From Octopus sinensis (lineage: Eukaryota), in assembly GCF_006345805.1 (NCBI RefSeq), contig NC_042999.1, positions 88,040,001 through 88,104,000 on the forward strand: DNA of 64,000 nucleotides. Reading direction: 5' to 3'. Numbering within the stretch: the first letter of the stretch is position 1; every line of letters begins with the position of its first letter. The translations under genes were made by a program, and so were the position numbers. This document shows positions 10,448 through 53,700 of the stretch, piece by piece. The notes beneath the pieces were generated by a model. It searched no databases. It worked only from the letters and a program-made list of their open reading frames with translations, and was not told the origin of the DNA.

Positions 10448-11731
10448 CGAGGGGCGTTCAATAAGTAATGCCTCTGACCCACTTCCCATAGCAGTAGAGC
10501 AACGAAACTTGGCACAGGTATTAGTCTTTTTCTACATAGGAACAACCCAGAGGTACGCATTTCTCCCATCGTTTGATGCAGTTCTGGAGACCGTTTTCGT
10601 AGAAGACCCCAGCTTGGTCCTCCAACCACGACGTGACTTCAGAAATCAAGGCTGCATCATCTGGGAAACGCTTTCCTTTCAAAAACAACTTCATGGCTGG
10701 GAAGAGGTGAAAATCAGAGGGTGCAAGGTCAGGAGAGTAGGGGGATGGGGGAATAGTTCATAGCCGCATGCCTATGCTTCTGATCTGGCGACACGCGAGT
10801 TGTGGACCGGAGCGTTGTCCTGCAGGAGGAGGATGCCTTTGCTGATCTTGCCCCGCCTCTTGGTTTCGATAGCTTCTCTTAATTTCCTCAAAAGTGAAAC
10901 ATGATAGGCTCCTGTAATTGTGGTACCCTTTGCCAGGAAATCTGTCATCACTACTCCGTCCTGGTCCCAGAAGACTGTGAGCATGACCTTGCCAGCAGAG
11001 GGCTGCACCCTTGCCTTCTTTGGAGGAGGTGAGTCATGGTGCTTCCACTGCATTGACTGGGCTTTGGTCTCTGGATCATAGTGATGGACCCAGGTCTCAT
11101 CCTGTGTAATCAGTCTTTTGAAACATTTTGACTCATCTTCTTGGCACATCCCTAAATTCTCGCTTCTGGAATTCTTGCGTTCTTGCTTCTGGAAAAGTGT
11201 GAGCAACCTGGAAATCCATCTGGCAGACACCTTTTGCATATGCAAATGGTCATGAATGATAGTTTCCACAGACCCGGTACTAATCTTGACCTCATGGGCT
11301 ATTTGGCGAATAGTTATGCGTCGATCTTCCAAAATGGCAGCCTCAACTTGACGGACAGATGCCTCATCAATGGCAGAAGGGGTGCGACCAGATCTGGGAG
11401 CTGTTTCCACAGAGTTCCAACCATGTTTGAATTCATGATGCCAGCGTTTTACAAGGTCATATGATGGGGCATCATCACCATAAGTTACTTTCATTTCATT
11501 AAAAGTCTCCTGTGGTGTGCGTCATTTCAAATACAAAAACCGGATCACTGTTCGACACTCAACAGGCTCCATTTCCCACCTGACTCATTTCAAACACCTG
11601 TAAATCAGAAACCACAATTAGTTCGGAGCTGTAATTCACCACTTAATCTATAGTGATATCAATAATTGCACATTCAGCTAGATCAAACAAAGGCAAGTGG
11701 GTCAGAGGCATTACTTATTGAACGCCCCTCG
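10448..11731 (-). mobile_element. Full-length mariner (DD34D) transposon, 1284 bp, perfect 37-bp TIRs, TA target duplication
   Basis: TIR cgaggggcgttcaataagtaatgcctctgacccactt at 10448-10484 and its exact reverse complement at 11695-11731; TA at 10446-10447 and 11732-11733. Confidence 0.97.
10521..11572 (-). pseudogene. Mariner transposase pseudogene (~350 codons; two nonsense codons, one 1-bp deletion)
   Basis: MEPVECRTVIRFLYLK*...TQDETW...QDNAPVH...*...HPP(fs)YSPDLAPSDFHLFP...SYVEKD*. There are 34 residues between the 2nd and 3rd Asp after repairing the frameshift in a C5 run. Confidence 0.95.
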
Positions 11732-24249: not shown

Positions 24250-25290
24250 GTGTGTTCAGCTGAATAAAATTACTGCTGTTATTTGTCAACAACAACTTCT
24301 GGCGGTATATATTTCCATGACATGAAAGAAGTTTATGGTGACGATGCACCATCATATGACGTAATCATGTACAGGCATCGCCAGTTCATATGTGCTCGGA
24401 CACCGGTGGAAACTGATCCTATTCCTGGACAACCACATTCCGCCATTTATGACGATACCATCCATAAAGTGCGAGCCGACATTTTGGAGGATCGCCGCAT
24501 AACTATTCGGCAACTAGCCCAATAAGTTAAATAAGTGTAGCGTCTGTGGAAAAAATCATTCACGACCATTTGCACATACGGAAGTTGTCTGTACGATGGA
24601 TTTCTCAGATGTTCACACCTTTTCAGAACCAGGATCAAGTCAATTGCTCCCAAACTCATTTGGCAATGTGCCAAGAAAACGAGGAGGACTTTTTCGATAA
24701 AATTATCACACAGAATGGAACATGGGTCCATCACTATGATCTTGAGATTAAAGTCCCGTTGAAGCAATGAAAGCATGCTAGCTCACCATCTCCAAAGAAG
24801 GCTCGTGTCCAACCTTCATCACACAAGGTAATGCTAATCGTCCTTTGGGAGCAGCTCGGAGTAGTGATGATGGATTTTCTGGCAAAGTGTACCACAATTA
24901 ACAGGGCATATTATACTTCTTTGCTACAGAAATTATGGGACTGCATCAAAGCAAGAACGCATGGCATGCTGACCAATGTCATCCGCCTCCTCCAAAACAA
25001 CGCCCCAGTTCACAATGCACATGTTAACAAGATGAAAGCATACTCCTGGGGTTATGAAATCCTTACTCAATGCCCCCACTCTCCCACCTCGCATTATCTG
25101 ACTTCTACCTCTTTCCAACCAAGAAGTCATTTTTTGAAGGAAAAGCACTTTCTATATGATGAACTTATTTCTGAGGTAATGTCTTGGCTCTAGACGCAAT
25201 CTACCGACTTCTACAGATGAGCCCTTCACAGCTGCATAAAGCAATGAGAGAGGTGTGTGATTATTTGGTGGCTATGTAGAGGACTAATAA
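24250..25290 (+). pseudogene. Heavily decayed mariner transposase, same subfamily as 10521-11572
   Basis: DMKEVYGDDAPSYD...ILEDRRITIRQ...IIHDHLH...WVHHYD...PKKARVQPS...LLQNNAPVHN; many stops and frameshifts; TIRs not recognised. Confidence 0.9.
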
Positions 25291-35370: not shown

Positions 35371-35467
35371 GGACAAATGGTAGCTGAATGAATTGGAAAG
35401 GCTTGTCAAGAACATGAAATGCACAATATTCAAGTCGAAGTAAGGAGGTCTAGGGTCCGGTTGCGAA
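35371..35467 (+). pseudogene. rpsK: Bacterial ribosomal protein S11 fragment
   Basis: GQMVAE*IGKACQEHEMHNIQVEV(fs)GLGSGCE resembles S11 AQMxAExAxKAxxEHGxxxxxVxVKGPGxGRE. Confidence 0.7.
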
Positions 35468-35497: not shown

Positions 35498-35602
35498 ACG
35501 CATGAAATTGTTCGAGAAAATATTACAATATCAGTTATGTATTCAGGTAGCATTAAAGGAACAGGAACAAGCTGTCCTAGTTTTGAAGATTAAATTCCTT
35601 TT
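35498..35602 (+). pseudogene. mnmG: Bacterial MnmG/GidA tRNA-modification enzyme fragment
   Basis: THEIVRENITISVMYSGSIKGTGTSCPSFED*IPF matches the conserved THExIxxNLxxSPMYSGxIxGxGPRYCPSIEDKxxRF motif. Confidence 0.8.
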
Positions 35603-35620
35603 GAATAAGTAGAGAATAAG

Positions 35621-35656
35621 ATAATTGGAACTTTAAAATATATTTCTCCTGAAATT
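35621..35656 (+). pseudogene. Ser/Thr protein kinase subdomain VIII-like shard (PrkC/PknB-type?)
   Basis: IIGTLKYISPEI fits GTxxYx[AS]PE, but is only 12 codons. Confidence 0.4.
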
Positions 35657-35807
35657 ACTCACAAGTTCTTTCATCTCACCCTGGTTTTGTGCATCTACAT
35701 TTTCAACTGATATTTGCCTTGCAAAATTACTCCATTTATATCGGATTTGATAATTTACCGCGTGCTTATAAATGTAATGGTATATAAAAAGGAGTAATGT
35801 TTATTGC

Positions 35808-36199
35808 CGTTACTACCATTTTAACTCCAGGAGGATGCCTCCAGATGGTTATTCAATGCAGTCTGCACCCTGTATATATTGCATGCAGGTAGCAAACCAC
35901 TACCACTTCCAGTGTTGGAACCATCAGACCGTACGGTTTCAAGCTATTTCTACTTATCCTCAGTGGTGGATACTCGTCCGCTAAAGATAGCAATAGTTCA
36001 TTCCAGCTCACAATATATAGAAAAATAAGAATCCACAACTGAAGATGAACACAAATAGCTCGAAACCGTACGGTTTGGTGGTCCTGTTGCTGGAAAATGG
36101 TAGGGATTCGCTTCTCTGTATGCAATATATCCAGGGTGGAAACTGCATCGAATAACCAGCTGGAGGAGGCATCCTCTTGGGGTTAAAATGGTATTAACG
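35808..36199. mobile_element. Foldback MITE-like element (~390 bp, ~170-bp imperfect arms)
   Basis: cgttactaccattttaactccaggaggatgcc...gtacggtttcaagctattt vs the reverse complement of the right half cgttaataccattttaaccccaagaggatgcc...gtacggtttcgagctattt. TSD ambiguous (TA or TTAA/TTAC). Confidence 0.75.
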
Positions 36200-36635
36200 C
36201 TACTTATGGAGCAGTCATGTTGAAGTGGTGATAAACATTACTTCTCAGTACAGTTACTGCTTTCATCTCTTATAGAGGTTTTCTAACTATCTAATTCGCT
36301 CATTGGTAAATAAAAACATCGATATACTAGAAAACTTAGCATTAATGCTGCTGCTGCTTTTGATTTTGAACGATCATATCCTATGTAATAAAAAATTGAA
36401 GCACATGCTTGAATCAGCAGAATTTTCGTATAATAACTTATTCATGCGCTTCTTCAATTTGTTCACTTGAAGATAACGCTAAAAAAAATGCACCCTTTAT
36501 GATCTAGCATGAAATGCTACCAAAAACTAAAAATTTGTATGAATATCAGTTCACGATTTGTTAATGAATTAGATATTCGGGCTGTATCACATTCTGATGC
36601 TGCAGCATATTTTCACCGAAATTAAGCGGAAACAG

Positions 36636-36777
36636 TTATTCTGGCACTGTTAAATAAGTTAATAAACGAATAACAATTGATACCTTTAAGGTAAAATAAA
36701 TTCTTTTGACAATATGTTTTGAATATATCGACACTTGTTGTTTTTTTAAGATTTTCTCTTTTTACCTTCTGCATTCA
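36636..36777 (-). pseudogene. secY: Bacterial SecY N-terminal fragment
   Basis: KHIVKRIYFTLKVSIVIRLLTYLTVPE* matches SecY TM1 (KxxxxRIxFTLxxLIxxRxxxxIxVP); lies immediately after the rplO stop as in the spc operon. Confidence 0.75.
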
Positions 36778-36780
36778 CTA

Positions 36781-36940
36781 TTACACAACCTCTACTTTTC
36801 CAGCTGCTGTTGCAGTTGCTTCTTTTGCAGAGTTTGAAATATTATAAATTTTTCATATTTAAACTCTCAGTCATTTTACGACTATCTCAAATTTTGAGAA
36901 AAGTTTTATCAAAATGTATTATTTGTATGTTTCTAATGTC
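36781..36940 (-). pseudogene. rplO: Bacterial ribosomal protein L15, C-terminal half
   Basis: ...ISNSAKEATATAAGKVEVV* matches the L15 end (xSxxAKEAIExAGGKVEVI). Confidence 0.85.
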
Positions 36941-37313
36941 TGCAAAAGCTACTGATGTACCTGATGTTATTAAGAAACCAATCAAAGGGGCTAAAAATTC
37001 ATTAGTAAGAGTACCACTTGTAGGAACACCAGCTGCTTATGAAATAATGGGATGTTTTGGAGCAGGTCAGGAATGATTATATCATTTATAAAGGGCCTGG
37101 AGTTATTACTGAAGGATGTGTTCGTGCTGTAACTGAACACGCTGGATTAGCAGATGTTTATGCAACATCATTAGGCTCAATTATACCAATTGATATGATT
37201 AGGGCTACAAAAGAAGAATTGAAATCATAAAGTATAGTTGACCAAGTTGCTAGATGAAGTCGTAAAGCAACTGAAGAATTATAAGAATAGTAGAAGTATG
37301 GGAGAATGAACTA
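36940..37313 (+). pseudogene. rpsE: Inverted duplicate of the 3' part of the rpsE pseudogene, inserted into rplO
   Basis: 374 bp, reverse complement of 37579-37952 with 3 mismatches. Confidence 0.93.
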
Positions 37314-37578
37314 TTATGATTAATATATTAAATATTTCATTTTTTAAATCTTTCAAATTAAAGATTGTATAGCATTTTGTATTAATGTGTGTAAATCCCT
37401 CTTTTGGAATTTCTTGGAAAATGGAAGTTTACCCCCCCCCCTTCAAATCAAGGGCGTACTCCTCCACCGGTACGAACATTTTGATCTTTCTTCACTTTAC
37501 CTGAAGTTTTTCCTCGTCCTAATCTGTTGCAGGAATGACGAGAACCTTCTGTATATTTTAAATCATTCTCTTATATTC
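37314..37578 (-). pseudogene. rplO: Bacterial ribosomal protein L15, N-terminal half
   Basis: [43 protein letters not shown](fs, G10 run)*TSIFQEIPKEGFTHINTKCYTIFNLKDL. Confidence 0.92.
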
Positions 37579-37607
37579 TAGTTCATTCTCCCATACTTCT
37601 ACTATTC

Positions 37608-38229
37608 TTATAATTCTTCAGTTGCTTTACGACTTCATCTAGCAATTTGGTCAACTATACTTTATGATTTCAATTCTTCTTTTGTAGCCCTAATCATATT
37701 AATTGGTATAATTGAGCCTAATGATGTTGCATAAACATCTGCTAATCCAGCGTGTTCAGTTACAGCACGAACACATCCTTCAGTAATAACTCCAGGCCCT
37801 TTATAAATGATATAATCATTCCTGACCTGCTCCAAAACATCCCATTATTTCATAAGCAGCTGGTGTTCCTTCAAGTGGTACTCTTACTAATGAATTTTTA
37901 GCCCCTTTGATTGGTTTCTTAATAACATCAGGTACATCAGTAGCTTTTGCAGTTACTAATCCAACACGTGCATTTTTATCACCAATGATTACGACTGCGG
38001 CAAATCTGAAATGACATTCATATTTTGTCACTCTTGTTATGCAATTGTTACAATTGTTTCAGAAAACTCATTACCAGCTTGATTGCAATTAAATGAAATT
38101 TGTTCAGTTAATGATGTTGTTTTAGGTTCATCTTGGTTATTATTGTTCTCTTTTTTCTTTTTTGCTTGCTCTTGAACAGTCGATATCAAATATACAATTT
38201 TTTTTCTGTCACATGTTTCTATTATTCAT
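37608..38229 (-). pseudogene. rpsE: Bacterial ribosomal protein S5 with a long N-terminal extension
   Basis: NEFSETIVTI(fs)RVTKYECHFRFAAVVIIGDKNARVGLVTAKATDVPDVIKK...VRVPLEGT...EIMGCFGAG(fs)[39 protein letters not shown]...EEL*. Confidence 0.95.
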
Positions 38230-38234
38230 TCTGA

Positions 38235-38520
38235 TTATAATTTTATACCATCTTCACGAGCTGATTCAAAAATGAATACTTGTTCATGATAAAACTAACC
38301 ACTGCAATCAAATACAATATTATGAATTTCGTTTAAGTTGAGCATTTTCAGCAATATCTGCGCCAGTGCTTCTTTAACAGCAGCAATAATTGAAGTTGAG
38401 TTTGATCTATTAATTGTGAATAACAATGAACACTTAATTTGTTCACATTTAATCTTGGGAGTAGTAAAGTACCTGCAATTTTATTTTAAAGACAGTAGCG
38501 TCTTTTGTTTTACAGTTAAT
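38235..38520 (-). pseudogene. rplR: Bacterial ribosomal protein L18
   Basis: KRRYCL*NKIAGTLLLPRLNVNKLSVHCYSQLID...IHNIVFDCSG*FYHEQV...ESAREDGIKL* matches L18 (SGTxxRPRLNV...YAQIID...VVFDRGGYxYHG...AARExGLKF). Confidence 0.88.
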
Positions 38521-38774
38521 AGAACATAAAGAATAATAATGTAAAAAATAGACATGGCTTAAGATATATAGAATCGAAGAACAAAATACCAGTTATAATG
38601 TGTGGGAATTATAAGTCTCTAAAGAAAATTATTTTTTTATAAATATTACGGTTTTAATTTTGAAAGGTAATTACTTTATATTTAATTTGTTAAGCTTTTA
38701 TAGAATACAACACAAGTGTTCCTGACTTATTTGCATCTTTCTTTCTCTTTCTCCCTCTCTCTCTTACATATATT

Positions 38775-39112
<338 letters not shown>

Positions 39113-41665
39113 CAATTTAATTATAGAAGAGTATGACTTTCCTACTTATGAATTAAAGTTAAAATGAAATCTACTTTGTCTGAATTAATAAATTCATTGT
39201 AACAGTAATGAACTATTGTCTTTGCGACAGCATCATATCGTAAATATTCTTAATTGTGATAAGTAATATCACAAGTTCTTTTAAATGGCAAGATTTTATA
39301 GTTATTTCCATCATTTGTTGTATTGACTGCTGTGCTACGAAAGTTTACATTTTGTTTGAAGTGTAGAATGGCATCGGAACATGTATTCTCAGTACTCTCC
39401 TGTATATTTCTGTATATGTTAAATAAACTAGGGGTGAAAATAGCAATCAGAATCTAACACTGGTTGTTCTTCCATCTTTATAATTGGTGGAGTGTAATCT
39501 AGTCCAGTATTTAATGCTACTGACGCTACTGATATTGCAGCTGTAATCTGTCTGTGTATGCTTTGTTTTTCATATTTACGTGACCTAAGTGGGGAATGTG
39601 GTCACAGCTTTTATGATGATGATGTTATAGTAGTTTCGAGCTGGTGTAGATGTATTTGGGCGATTTGTTGGGCGTAAGATTTTCAAGCAGCGTTAGGAGA
39701 GTGATGCTTGACATGTGTTGCGGCAACAAGCAGTACTTATCGAATGGTTGGAGAATTTTGATGAAGAGTTACTAAGGTAATATTACTATGAGGAAGTAAT
39801 CTGGTAAAATCTTGAGTTTGGTCGAAATCTGGTCTAATTAAGAAAATTATGTGAAGCATTTTGTATTTACAGAGAGATGTTGGTAGTTAATTATGCAAAA
39901 TAAAGGAATGAGTACTTAAATTATGATCAAACGAGCAATACTTTTAGAGCAGATGCTTTTATAGTATCTGTAGAAAAATAAAGGAAGGGGGACTAATTTG
40001 CAATAATCCACTTGTGAATAATGTTAGTGACTCTCCAGTTTAAAAGCTGGGTTTCTACTGCCACACAAGGAGCCTATCTGTCTTTGTCTGCTGAGACTTA
40101 TGAATATATGCATGTATGTATGTGCGTGTATATGTGTCTGGAGGAGATATACTTTCGACTTTTCTCATATGTATGTAGGATTCTAAAATGGAGTGTTTCT
40201 TCTTCAAGTGTATGGTATGAATTGCATTTGATCAGAGAATTTCGATAAATGATTTACTGATTCGCTCCATCATTATATTATTATATGTAGACGAATGCTT
40301 CCTTCTTCAACAACAGCATAATTCCTTCTTCAAAGGGAATTTTTATTAGCATACTTCTAAGAACTTATCATTAAAACATCCTTAATGTATAACAAAAGGA
40401 TAATTGACGTCACTATTATTCAGTCGATCTAACGAGTGAAGCTCTACATCGTCGCCCCGCCAATAACTAAATTTCTCCCTAAACCAGCGCCAACGTCTTA
40501 AATTGGGTGGGTTATATTCGATACTGTCGCTTCTAGATATTTATAAAAGAATGAGATGGTTACGGCAGTATAACTTTAGATCATAATTCACATCGCTCAG
40601 ACTCAGTGAGGTCAAAGACACTCAGCAACAGGAAATGCGACTTCTATCAGGCCTATTGTACTCGTAACTAGAAAAACTGAATTTGCTGCTTTTTTACTAA
40701 TCTGTAATATCGGGTCTTTAATATTCACATGCATACGTATTCATGCTGCGTTATTATCTACCTATATCCTTGATGTTATATGAAATAATATTGTAAAATT
40801 TATTGCTGAGCAACTTTACAAAGTGTGCTGCTGTATCAAGTGGGAATAATGTCTTTATAAGATATCAGCTTTTCTTAGACTACTGGCTATATGCAATGCG
40901 CATCAGCGTATGCATGTTTGCATACGCGTCTGTAGGAGCGTAACTCATAGTTAATTGCATGTCTAGGGATTCTCAGAAAGTAGTTACCCTTTGCTGATCA
41001 AGCTATTCTCTTAGAGGAGGATGTTTCTTTGAAATAAAAATAACCACACTATGATTATGCACCTTGTAAATCATTCATGTTGTGCTTAATTATCTTCAGT
41101 AATGGTGGAAAATTCCCATCCTGGAATTTTGCACTTTTAAGAACTAAGGATAAAATGGAATGAATTGTATAGTTCTTATGAGATACGTTCCCTTAGAAGA
41201 AAGTTATGCAGTTTGTTTTCTTTTTATGAGGGAAATTTGGCATTACGATATTAGAGATAATAGCACTAGTTTGATTTCATCGTAAAAGATTTAAATGTAT
41301 GGCATAATTCTCATGAAATCAGAGTAAAAAATATATGGTAGAATTTAGTGAGTCAGAGATATGAGGTTCGAGAATATTAACCACATTTCTAGCTATTCAT
41401 AGAAATCATTGTCCATTACATTACAATTGTAGAGATATAAAACATTACGAAATGGTAAATGCATGCATAGGGAGTGTATACGCGCGCGTGTCCTGTGTTT
41501 ATATTTGTGTGCTTGTGAATAAAAATGAAATTAGATATTAGAAATTCAAGTTAGACTTTTGCACGTTTAACGTTTCCTTCACGGTATTTTAAGGTTAAAC
41601 AGCAATTTTGTAGTACAGTAAATAAGGTAATTCCTAAAATACGGTTGGAGGTTGGTAAAACTTAC

Positions 41666-50100: not shown

Positions 50101-53045
50101 CATTCAGTAGTTTTATTTTTATAGCGTGCTTTCACTTCACTACCGAGCGCAGCTCTATGTGCCTTAGGTATGTGCTCTGATTTGTTGTGATGCTCTGATG
50201 GTTATTGCATGGAAAGTGTTCTGCGTAGGATGTGTGCAGTGCCTAGTAGTGCAATTTTCTGTATGTTATATGTGTTTGTAAGTCCTGATATTTTTGTTAT
50301 GTATTTGTCTGAATACTTTTTTATCATGCCTAATGCACCTACTATGAGAGGAATTGTTTCTATTTTTAGATTCCACATTCTGGTTACCTCTATTTCTAGG
50401 TCTTTGTATTTTGAAAGTTTCTCCATTTCTTTTAGAGTCACGTTGTCATCTGCCGGTATTGATACATCAATTAGAAAGCATTTTTTTTCTTCATGATCTC
50501 TGACAACTATATCTGGTCTGTTGGCCTTAATTTCTCTATCTGTGTGTATCGGCATATCCCAGAGTATGGTTGCTTTCTCGTTTTCTGTAACCTTTTCTGG
50601 TGTGTGCCTATACCATCTTTTTTCTGTTTTTATTCCATAATGTTGGCATAGCTTCCAGTGTATGTAGGTTCCAACTCTGTCATGTCTGTGAATATATTCC
50701 TTCTTAGCCAGGACTGGGCAGCCAGAGATAATATGATTTATTGTTTCTTGTCCATCTCCACATATTCTGCAGTTACTTGTTATATTTCTTTTCATTACAT
50801 GTCTTTGGTAATTTCTGGTGGGGAGGCTTTGGTCTTGTGCTGCAATTAAAAATCCCTCTGTCTCTGCTTTGAGTCCTGAGCTTCTCAACTATTGCTGGGA
50901 TTTTTCTTTGTCTATTTCTTTTGCGTTTAGTTTAGTCCAGTATTTACCATGAAGGGGCTTTTCTTGCCATCGTTTTATCATTGTTCGTTGCTGTTCTGTT
51001 TTTAGTTTGGATTTCATTTGTTTTATAGCTTTTGTTGTTTCTTCATCTTCTTCTTCTTCTTCATATTTATTAGGTGGTATGATTTCTTGCTTGTATTTGT
51101 CAGCTTCCTTAAATACTGAGAACAGTTTTTTGTTTTGCTCGTGTTTTGCCGCTATTTGTATCAGTTTTCCTTCCTTCTGAAGTAGATATTTTTGCAGTCC
51201 TATGGTGGATATTTTATAGTAGTTTTCGAGTTGTATAAGGCCTCTACCACTTTCTATACGTTGTATATATAGTCTTTCTATGTCAGATTTTGGGTGATGC
51301 ATCCTAGATCCTGTCAGTATTTTTCTTGTTTTCCAATCTATTTTGGTCAGTTCATTTCGTGTCCAGTTAAGGATATTGTAGCTGTAACTTATAACTGGGA
51401 CAGCTAAAGTGTTAATACCTATTATCTTGTTTTTAGCATTGAGCTCTGTTTTTAGTATTGATCTAACTCGTCTATAATATTCTTTTTTTATTTTCTTTTT
51501 CATTTGTGTGTGTTGTGTGTTATCTAGTTCATGGATTCCTAAGTATTTGTAAGTTTGGCTTTGGTCTAATTATTTTATTTCATTGGTTTTATCTAGTGTG
51601 ATGTTGCTACTCTTAACTAGTTTTCCTCTTTTCAGGGTTACTTTGGCGCATTTTTCTAATCCAAATTTCATATCTATTTCTTTGGTAAATCCATGAACTG
51701 TCTTTAATAGTGTTTCCAGCTGTTTGTAATTTGCAGAGTATAGTTTTAGGTCATCCATATATAAAAGGTGGCTGATCGTTTTGCCGTAACATTTATATCC
51801 GCATCCAGTTCTATTTAACATATCAGATAGAGGTGACAGTGCCAAGCAGAAAAGGAGTAGAGAGAGAGTGTCTCCCTGGAATATTCCTCTTCTAATGGGG
51901 TTGGCTTTGGTTTTCATGAGTCCCTCTTTTGTTTGGAGCTGTAGCACGGTTTGCCATTTATTCATAGAGTGCCTTATGAATGTTATAAGTGTTGGTGCTA
52001 CTTTGTTAATGGTTAGTGTTTCGAGGATCCATGTGTGGGGGATGCTATCAAACGCCTTTTTTGTAATCGATCCAGGCCATACTGAGACCTTTCTTATTTC
52101 TGTGGCTGTCTTCCGTTATGGCTTTATTAATCATTAGTTGATCTTTACAGCCATATGAGCCTTTGCGGCATCCTTTCTGCTCTTCTGGAAACAGGTTGTT
52201 TTCGTCCAGGTGCTTGTTCAACCTTTGCGTTATCACTGCAGTAAATGCCTTGTATATTGTAGGGAGACATGTTATTGGTCTGTAGTTTTCTGGTTTTGCT
52301 GTCTCATTTGATTTGGGAATTAAGATGGTTTTCCCCTTCGTGAGTCATTCAGGCATTGTCTCTGGCTCTGCTAGCATGCTGTTAAAGTTTTCAGCCAGCT
52401 TTTTGTGCATTACTGTTAGATATTTCAACCAGAAGTTGGGGATCTTGTCATGCCCAGGTGCCTTCCAGTTGCTTAGTCTTTGCAGTGCCTGGATGACCTC
52501 TTCAGTTGTTTTGGGGGTCCAAAGTTGCTCAGATGCTGAGTTTGTTGTTTTCATACTTCTTTTTTTTGTTTGTTCGTTCGCCGACCATATTTATCTCCAG
52601 AATTCTTCCACTTCTTCTGCCGTTGGTGTTGCAATGACTTCTATTTTATTTTTGCCAAGTTCTTGGTAGAACTTTTTGGGGTTGCAGTTGAACTTTTTGT
52701 TTTGTTCAAAGAAGCGCTGGCGTTTCTCGTACCGGCGGATCCTTTGTGCTTTGGCAAGGATATCTTGCTTCAGCTTTTCTTTTATCTCAGGTATATTTTT
52801 TTCTGTGATGTTATATTTGCGGAGTATTTTTGTTTTCTTTTTGTTGCTCAGTAGCGTTGATTGTCTACTGATTTCATCAAGAATCGACAGACCTTTTCTC
52901 ATTTTTTGTATTTTGTTTTGGATGTTATTTATCCACAGGGTTTGTTTGGGTGGTGGTACTCCTGTTTGGATGGGTTTGAGTGAGTATCTTTTGTGGCTGC
53001 AGTGGCTGCTGCGTATACTAAGTCATTTAGCTTAGTGATATCGCT
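50101..53045 (-). mobile_element. Dong/R4-clade LINE, 5'-truncated (~2.9 kb), RT + CCHC + RLE, inserted in (TAA)n
   Basis: NWKAPGHDKI, NYRPITCLP, WIDYKK, RGIFQGD, HLLYMDDLKLY (RT); CRICGDGQETINHIISGC (CCHC); RPDIVV...IDVSIP...KLSKYKDL (RLE). (ATT)n on both sides (50027-50100, 53046-53316); several stops and frameshifts. Confidence 0.96.
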
Positions 53046-53066
53046 TATTATTATTATTATTATTAA

Positions 53067-53108
<42 letters not shown>

Positions 53109-53125
53109 CATTATTATTATAGTTA

Positions 53126-53157
<32 letters not shown>

Positions 53158-53212
53158 GTTATCATTATTATTATTATCATTATTATTATCGTTATCATTA
53201 TTATTATTGTTA

Positions 53213-53271
<59 letters not shown>

Positions 53272-53275
53272 GTTA

Positions 53276-53316
<41 letters not shown>
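53046..53316. repeat. (ATT)n/(ATC) microsatellite
   Basis: Direct reading. Confidence 0.98.
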
Positions 53317-53700
53317 GAGCTAGCAGAATCATTAGCTGCCGGGCTAAATGCTAAGCAACATTTAGCCCATGTATACGTGCTGGGTTCAAATTTCGCCGAG
53401 GACGACTTTGCATATCATACTTTCGGAGACAATAAAATGAGTACCAGTTGAGTACCATTCGACGAAATCGAATTAACCTCCACTCTGGAATTGCTGGCCT
53501 TGTGCCACTATTGGAAACCATTATTATTATTATTATTAAGACTGTGACATTTCAGAATCTTTAGTGCGTCAGACAATATTCTTAATGGCATTTCTTCCGG
53601 CTATTTACAATCACAATTCAACGGCGTCGACTTTACCTTTCATACTTTCGAGTTCGATAAATTAAAGTACCAGTCAAATACAAGGATCAATCTAAACAAC
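53317..53700 (+). mobile_element. Two tandem degenerate family B SINEs separated by a short (ATT)n
   Basis: gagctagcagaatc...gggttcaaatttcgccgagg; second copy with gtcgactttacctttcatactttcgagttcgataaattaaagtaccag. Confidence 0.7.

Follow-up and report, generated by a model that had tools for sequence, protein, structure and literature searches.

A 373–374-nt inverted copy of rpsE sequence within rplO in a decayed Spiroplasma-like gene tract of octopus DNA

A decayed Spiroplasma-like rplO gene in the 64-kb stretch of octopus DNA analyzed here (the window) is split by a reversed copy of part of the neighboring, likewise decayed rpsE gene, and the copy and its source now form a long inverted repeat. 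The context of the arm boundaries identified which arm is the copy, the interrupted gene was intact at the resolution of one codon, and lesions common to both arms placed the copying after the decay of the genes. We infer that one event produced this arrangement, probably a single switch-and-return (fold-back) templated insertion in DNA that was already dead. Such an event may have started at a break or at a fork, which, like the polymerase involved, sequence by itself does not reveal.

The bacterial gene tract and its surroundings

The minus strand carries a decayed rplR-rpsE-rplO-secY fragment of ~1.5 kb. The gene names rpsE and rplO given in the first-pass annotation were correct, as seen from NCBIfam matches to rpsE_bact (1.6e-29), rplO_bact (3.5e-6), and L18_bact (1.6e-5). 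The features of the tract and its inverted repeat are as follows, together with an outlying fragment on its left.

35374–35445, plus strand: rpsK (S11)-like fragment of 24 codons, 16/24 identical, QMVAEWIGKACQEHEMHNIQVEVR (tblastn)
36642–36782, minus strand: secY 5' fragment (aa 14–55), with which the colinear bacterial tract ends on the left
36784–36939, minus strand: 3' part of the rplO pseudogene (codons ~94–145), cut off from the 5' part by the insert
36940–37313, plus strand: left arm, the inserted copy, with rpsE codons ~91–205, the stop codon, and 29 nt of rpsE-rplO spacer
37282–37284, plus strand: rpsE stop codon (TAA) in the left arm
37314–37578, minus strand: spacer between the arms, with 2 nt of intergenic sequence and rplO codons 1 to ~93 (pseudogene)
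37579–37952, minus strand: right arm, the source copy, with the 3' part of the rpsE pseudogene and intergenic spacer (stop codon at 37610–37608)
37953–38230, minus strand: 5' part of the rpsE pseudogene, beyond the repeat, with a frameshift between '...TIVTIA' and 'RVTKYE...'
38238–38506, minus strand: rplR (L18) pseudogene bearing a frameshift and stops, with which the bacterial tract ends on the right

Comparison of the S5 fragment with 5.8 billion proteins returned matches exclusively to Spiroplasma S5 (56–59% amino acid identity), and none of these sequences was nearly identical to it. The gene order of the tract, rplR-rpsE-rplO-secY without rpmD, was that of a Spiroplasma reference locus (L002). 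When 31 reference operon proteins were searched by tblastn, only rplR, rpsE, rplO, secY', and the rpsK fragment were recovered in the tract and its flanks. A search of genome contigs with the S5 fragment yielded one irrelevant archaeal match, and exact-peptide patterns are too strict for a donor of ~59% identity.

As a whole, the rpsE (S5) pseudogene occupies about 38230–37608 of the minus strand and the interrupted rplO (L15) pseudogene 37576–36784, with the former rplO start codon now reading ATA (37576–37574). Multiple stops and at least five frameshifts had accumulated in ~1.5 kb. In Spiroplasma, TGA encodes Trp (genetic code 4); because the donor uses this code, the TGA 'stops' of the tract need not be lesions. 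At 37432–37441, within the conserved 'FEGG' motif of L15, ten consecutive C residues (ten G on the gene strand) coincided with a frameshift and represent a homopolymer expansion in the rplO pseudogene.

The sequence on both sides of the tract was eukaryotic: it was rich in microsatellites and contained mariner transposase ORFs as well as a LINE whose ORFs are long. Scans of the window for tRNA and Rfam families gave no matches. Because Spiroplasma-like genes in donor order lie pseudogenized within eukaryotic sequence, we regard the tract as a small, long-dead nuclear integrant of Spiroplasma-like DNA in an animal chromosome, as judged from gene content and context. The breakage of two essential genes was tolerated because these genes are Spiroplasma-like sequence in an animal chromosome.

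Several other elements were noted in the window. Two mariner-type transposases (10562–11499 and 24317–25251) were ~70% identical to each other and lay in opposite orientations; the first retained an open frame of 240 aa, and the best named relative was from the mantis shrimp Oratosquilla oratoria (84%), a match that is weak evidence on host affinity since mariners move horizontally. A LINE-type retroelement (50202–51965, minus strand) had three consecutive long ORFs of 131, 204, and 228 aa and therefore looks young. Its closest relatives (82–88%) were on short contigs, one of them in the NCBI assembly GCA_024449705.1, and relatives at ~60% were found in echinoderms, corals, and Penaeus. Overall, the best matches of the LINE and mariner ORFs were at 82–91%, and the named relatives were marine invertebrates, crustaceans among them. 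Long (TA)n tracts with many perfect small palindromes followed the bacterial tract closely on its right (38944–39131), and a long low-complexity tract with mostly isoleucine ORFs was located at 52929–53451.

The rpsK-like fragment lies ~1.2 kb to the left of the tract in the orientation opposite to that of the remaining operon pieces, and of the sequence expected between it and secY', the genes adk, infA, rpmJ, and rpsM are absent altogether, as is the greater part of secY; this inverted fragment points to further rearrangement of the same insert. Also between rpsK and secY, a segment of ~392 nt (35808–36199, centered near 36003) matched its own reverse complement at 74% identity. This segment was present once in the window, had no similarity to bacterial proteins, and could be a fold-back element if it is not a palindrome left by an older inverted duplication. 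Given the inverted rpsK fragment and this palindrome, the tract has been rearranged more than once.

Structure, direction, and timing of the duplication

A repeat search of positions 35500–39500 identified one long inverted repeat, with arms at 36940–37313 and 37579–37952, each 374 nt long, 99% complementary, and 265 nt apart. Base-by-base comparison of the arms over 374 nt found three mismatches and no indels: T at left-arm position 37021 against the complement of 37871, G at 37192 against 37700, and G at 37246 against 37646. These results agreed with the arm coordinates, the three differing sites, and the 265-bp spacer reported in the first-pass annotation. The differences, amounting to 0.8% (3/374 nt), were all substitutions, and none was in a homopolymer. 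The same comparison showed that pairing ended abruptly at all four arm ends, leaving the flanks unpaired. By self-BLAST, this was the sole repeat of >90% identity in the 64-kb window, the remaining repeats being transposon copies of 66–89% identity, and an inverted repeat of 374 nt is far beyond chance.

The two arms differed in their context. On the right, aa 62–134 of S5 aligned as one HSP from 38040 to 37822 (tblastn), crossing the outer boundary of the arm at 37952/37953, and the inner end of this arm ran through the rpsE stop codon (37610–37608) and 29 nt of spacer to end 3 nt before the former rplO start. On the left, aa 91–134 and 142–205 of S5 were encoded on the plus strand at 36939–37070 and 37090–37281, respectively (tblastn), and the arm was flanked on both sides by internal rplO codons. 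Since the right arm is continuous with native rpsE, and removal of the left arm restores the colinearity of L15, the left arm is the insert. The opposite assignment, with the left arm as original and the right arm as copy, was ruled out by the context at all four boundaries.

The state of the target was examined by removing the insert in silico. In the unedited sequence, aa 4–97 of Spiroplasma L15 mapped to 37567–37301 and aa 123–145 to 36852–36784. Removing 373 nt while keeping C36940 gave one L15 HSP that scored 81 bits and spanned aa 4–145, whereas both the unedited sequence and a version lacking all 374 nt scored 67 bits, and the alignment ended at the junction. The uninterrupted rplO join on the minus strand would be ...ATTAATCATAAGACATTAGAA..., and the rejoined site reads INH-K-TLE, compared with INH-Q-TLV in Spiroplasma L15 (...DINHQTLVTKK...). 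The first-pass reading of the rejoined site as INHKTLE was thus upheld by the alignment. Direct reading of the sequence found no target-site duplication at the left arm, and the rplO target appears to have undergone no detectable loss or gain at one-codon resolution, as gauged against an L15 that is only 46% identical and with the ancestral state taken from this protein outgroup rather than from an ancestral DNA allele. Junction homology was 1 bp at the outer junction (C36940/G37952) and 0 bp at the inner junction (37313–37314/37578–37579). C36940 may belong to rplO, and because it is a 1-bp junction overlap the insert length is given as 373–374 nt. The earlier description of an insertion with no deletion, no target-site duplication, and 1 bp of microhomology therefore holds at codon resolution, with 0 bp at the inner junction.

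The decay of rpsE provided the order of events. In both arms, S5 residues up to aa 134 and from aa 142 onward are in different frames, reflecting a common frameshift, and both carry a common TAA within '...EELKS*SIVDQ...' and a common TGA. As the arms align without gaps, all indels are common to both. The common frameshift and TAA indicate that copying postdated pseudogenization. The stops and frameshifts previously described as shared thus include one certain frameshift and one certain TAA, whereas the TGA may not be a lesion.

The three differences between the arms, all non-synonymous in the old rpsE frame, were polarized against 19 Spiroplasma S5 proteins. A Val found in 18 of the 19 was retained in the copy and lost in the source; an Asn (19/19) and an Ile (18/19) were retained in the source and lost in the copy. 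As Val, Asn, and Ile are ancestral, the source has acquired one derived residue and the copy two. Three substitutions with derived states on both arms form the pattern expected of neutral drift after a real duplication, whereas long-read error would instead give mostly indels on one copy. The divergence of 0.8% is small beside the decay of the tract. The earlier claim that the duplication is much younger than the decay can accordingly be kept as to order, which follows from the shared frameshift and TAA; 'much younger' presumes that there was no gene conversion from arm to arm.

Mechanism and alternative explanations

The structure is best explained by the following course of events. A piece of ~1.5 kb carrying Spiroplasma-like rplR-rpsE-rplO-secY' would have entered the nuclear genome of the animal, where it decayed. 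Long afterwards, during break repair or at a fork, a growing DNA end would have left its template at rplO codon ~93 and jumped 265 nt back to the opposite strand in the rpsE-rplO spacer (in the sense direction of the operon), copying 373–374 nt backwards as far as rpsE (S5) codon ~91. Synthesis would then have resumed at the exact position left, that is, at the next base. In four-point notation this corresponds to a 3-2-1-4 event in which point 1 adjoins point 4, which is equivalent to fold-back (snap-back) followed by end capture. The product would be the 374-nt inverted repeat with its 265-nt loop, which would have drifted neutrally since then (three substitutions). In reverse complement, the inserted copy matches nearby sequence of the same molecule, the donor being 265 nt away, and one switch-and-return accounts for the whole difference from the ancestral state inferred from the protein outgroup.

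No inverted microhomology was found at the base of the hairpin, where pairing between the arms does not continue into the spacer (TTATGA... is unpaired with ...TATTC). If a microhomology were hidden within the end of the arm, rplO would gain bases, a reading that the L15 alignment does not favor. With junction homologies of 0 bp (inner) and 1 bp (outer), annealing-based priming is therefore not visible in the sequence, and such junctions suit the passive uptake of a fragment just as well. Nearly all local fold-back or theta inserts characterized by experiment are shorter than this one. The first-pass annotation had proposed replication template switching or polymerase theta; the generic label of template switch or fold-back suits the locus, while theta has no specific support in view of the 1/0 bp of homology and the length of 373–374 nt.

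The same arrangement could also have arisen by fragment capture, in which rplO, cleanly broken, would have taken up a free copy of 37579–37952, ligated by classical end joining and backwards by chance, with no priming by the break end. The captured fragment could be double- or single-stranded; over-replication, displacement, the sister chromatid, and the homologue are among its possible sources. Junction homologies of 1 bp and 0 bp are typical of NHEJ, and the uptake of near or far fragments at breaks has been documented (PMC11724301). However, the donor is only 265 nt away and still intact, and a local switch-and-return needs no fragment-generating step; furthermore, the break lost no bases. 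We consider fragment capture unlikely, while still giving it some weight.

An assembly or library artefact would require that a chimeric molecule, such as a strand-displacing polymerase chimera or a fold-back long read, entered the consensus, with the three mismatches being haplotype differences or uncorrected errors. All four junctions rest on one assembly. Neither the 88-aa ORF spanning the left junction nor P0001 had a database record, and when metagenome contigs were scanned for exact matches to two arm sequences, a 32-mer and a 23-mer, none was found. Marine invertebrates commonly show heterozygosity of nearly 1%, and haplotype mixing could mimic a divergence of 0.8%. Yet the path exits rplO and re-enters it at the adjacent base, giving two exact junctions where library chimeras normally have one, and fold-back reads yield palindromes that have no spacer and never rejoin the flank. 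This exact return to the target is a stronger argument against an artefact than the mismatches, which the first-pass annotation had invoked: by themselves the mismatches would also fit a haplotype-mixing chimera, although their restriction to substitutions outside homopolymers, with derived states on both arms, does disfavor read error. Taken together, these observations make an artefact unlikely.

Slightly less probable again is an old rearrangement, in which the inverted piece would have been joined in at or soon after integration (multi-fragment end joining) and the arms, lesions included, later homogenized by gene conversion. The tract is otherwise scrambled, as seen from the inverted rpsK fragment and the loss of most of secY through rpsM, and inverted repeats are known substrates of gene conversion. 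Conversion would nevertheless have had to spread the frameshift and the TAA over 374 nt while sharp ends stayed at a codon-precise site, and the older palindrome nearby (35808–36199) has drifted to 74%, so that the locus shows no evident homogenization. A mobile element that carried rpsE sequence into rplO has a negligible probability, the entire insert being homologous to rpsE and its spacer and nothing favoring such an element except that the arm is an insertion; a transposon was rejected since target-site duplication, terminal repeats, and further copies in the window were all absent.

A single switch-and-return insertion of this kind belongs to a known class of mutation, and the locus is an unusually long and clean example that reveals neither a new mechanism nor a function; the insert itself has no evident function. 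Its value lies in the two dead but recognizable reading frames, which serve as a ruler that tells original from copy, gauges loss at the target, orders the events, and registers independent later mutation. The locus thereby offers a teaching-quality natural case of a long switch-and-return templated insertion and a calibration point for callers of template switches and fold-backs, being long and almost devoid of microhomology. The locus also serves to mark a nuclear insert of Spiroplasma-like origin, and a Spiroplasma-like fragment in an animal chromosome is one more case of a known phenomenon.

Two further possibilities are highly speculative. If the locus is transcribed, a 374-bp hairpin with a 265-nt loop could give rise de novo to hairpin RNA or small interfering RNA; separately, the locus could represent natural germline fold-back from a 265-nt loop over hundreds of bases with essentially no priming homology. 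The predicted stem of a plus-strand transcript contains two G-U pairs and one U-U mismatch. If true, a source of hairpin RNA would have been born by template switching from symbiont-derived DNA. A template-switch origin has reportedly been proposed for new miRNA hairpins.

Comparison with known systems

As a nuclear integrant, the tract can be compared with the Spiroplasma ixodetis cassettes integrated in the nuclear genome of Ixodes ricinus (PMC11617991). In both cases, Spiroplasma-type genes in bacterial order are pseudogenized, fragmented, and interleaved with host sequence. The octopus tract differs in its host, its very small size, and its amino acid identity of only ~59% to any sequenced Spiroplasma.

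For the insertion itself, the FoSTeS/MMBIR and ODIRA models share with this locus a replication-based switch to the opposite strand that generates inverted copies. These models describe copy-number changes of kilobases to megabases, usually with microhomology (PMC10766183), whereas the event described here is of sub-kilobase size and returns to its origin. Inserts made by Pol theta or SD-MMEJ range from a few to tens of bp, are primed by microhomology of at least 2 bp, and are often accompanied by deletions (PMC2943611, PMC4912351). The templating of the insert from the break flank is similar, and snap-back is a described mode of this pathway; the homology of 0–1 bp, the lack of a detectable deletion, and the length of hundreds of bp are different.

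A closer topological match is provided by yeast breaks, at which fold-back of one end with a 41-nt loop is followed by Pol delta extension along that end's own flank, unwinding, and NHEJ capture by the other end with 0–5 bp of homology (PMC11724301). As in yeast, the octopus locus contains an inverted copy of the break flank, a loop, and capture homology within the range of 0–5 bp (here 1 bp), and it likewise combines an inverted repeat and spacer with no loss at the break. The yeast inserts are 2 to ~150 bp long, mostly under 14 bp, and arise from inverted microhomology of 10 bp (PMC11724301), in contrast to the insert of 373–374 nt, the loop of 265 nt, and the lack of inverted homology at the priming junction found here.

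In the four-point template-switch model, nearby sequence is copied as its reverse complement and an inverted repeat is made (Loytynoja & Goldman 2017, PMC5453318). The 3-2-1-4 pattern is compatible with either the nascent strand itself (snap-back) or the other parental strand as template (PMC5453318), and this event type fits the octopus locus exactly. In human haplotype assemblies, template-switch events of up to 318 bp have been described (PMC9435742). Compared with such catalogued events, the locus is a pure insertion that, at 373–374 nt, lies at or beyond the long end of the class.
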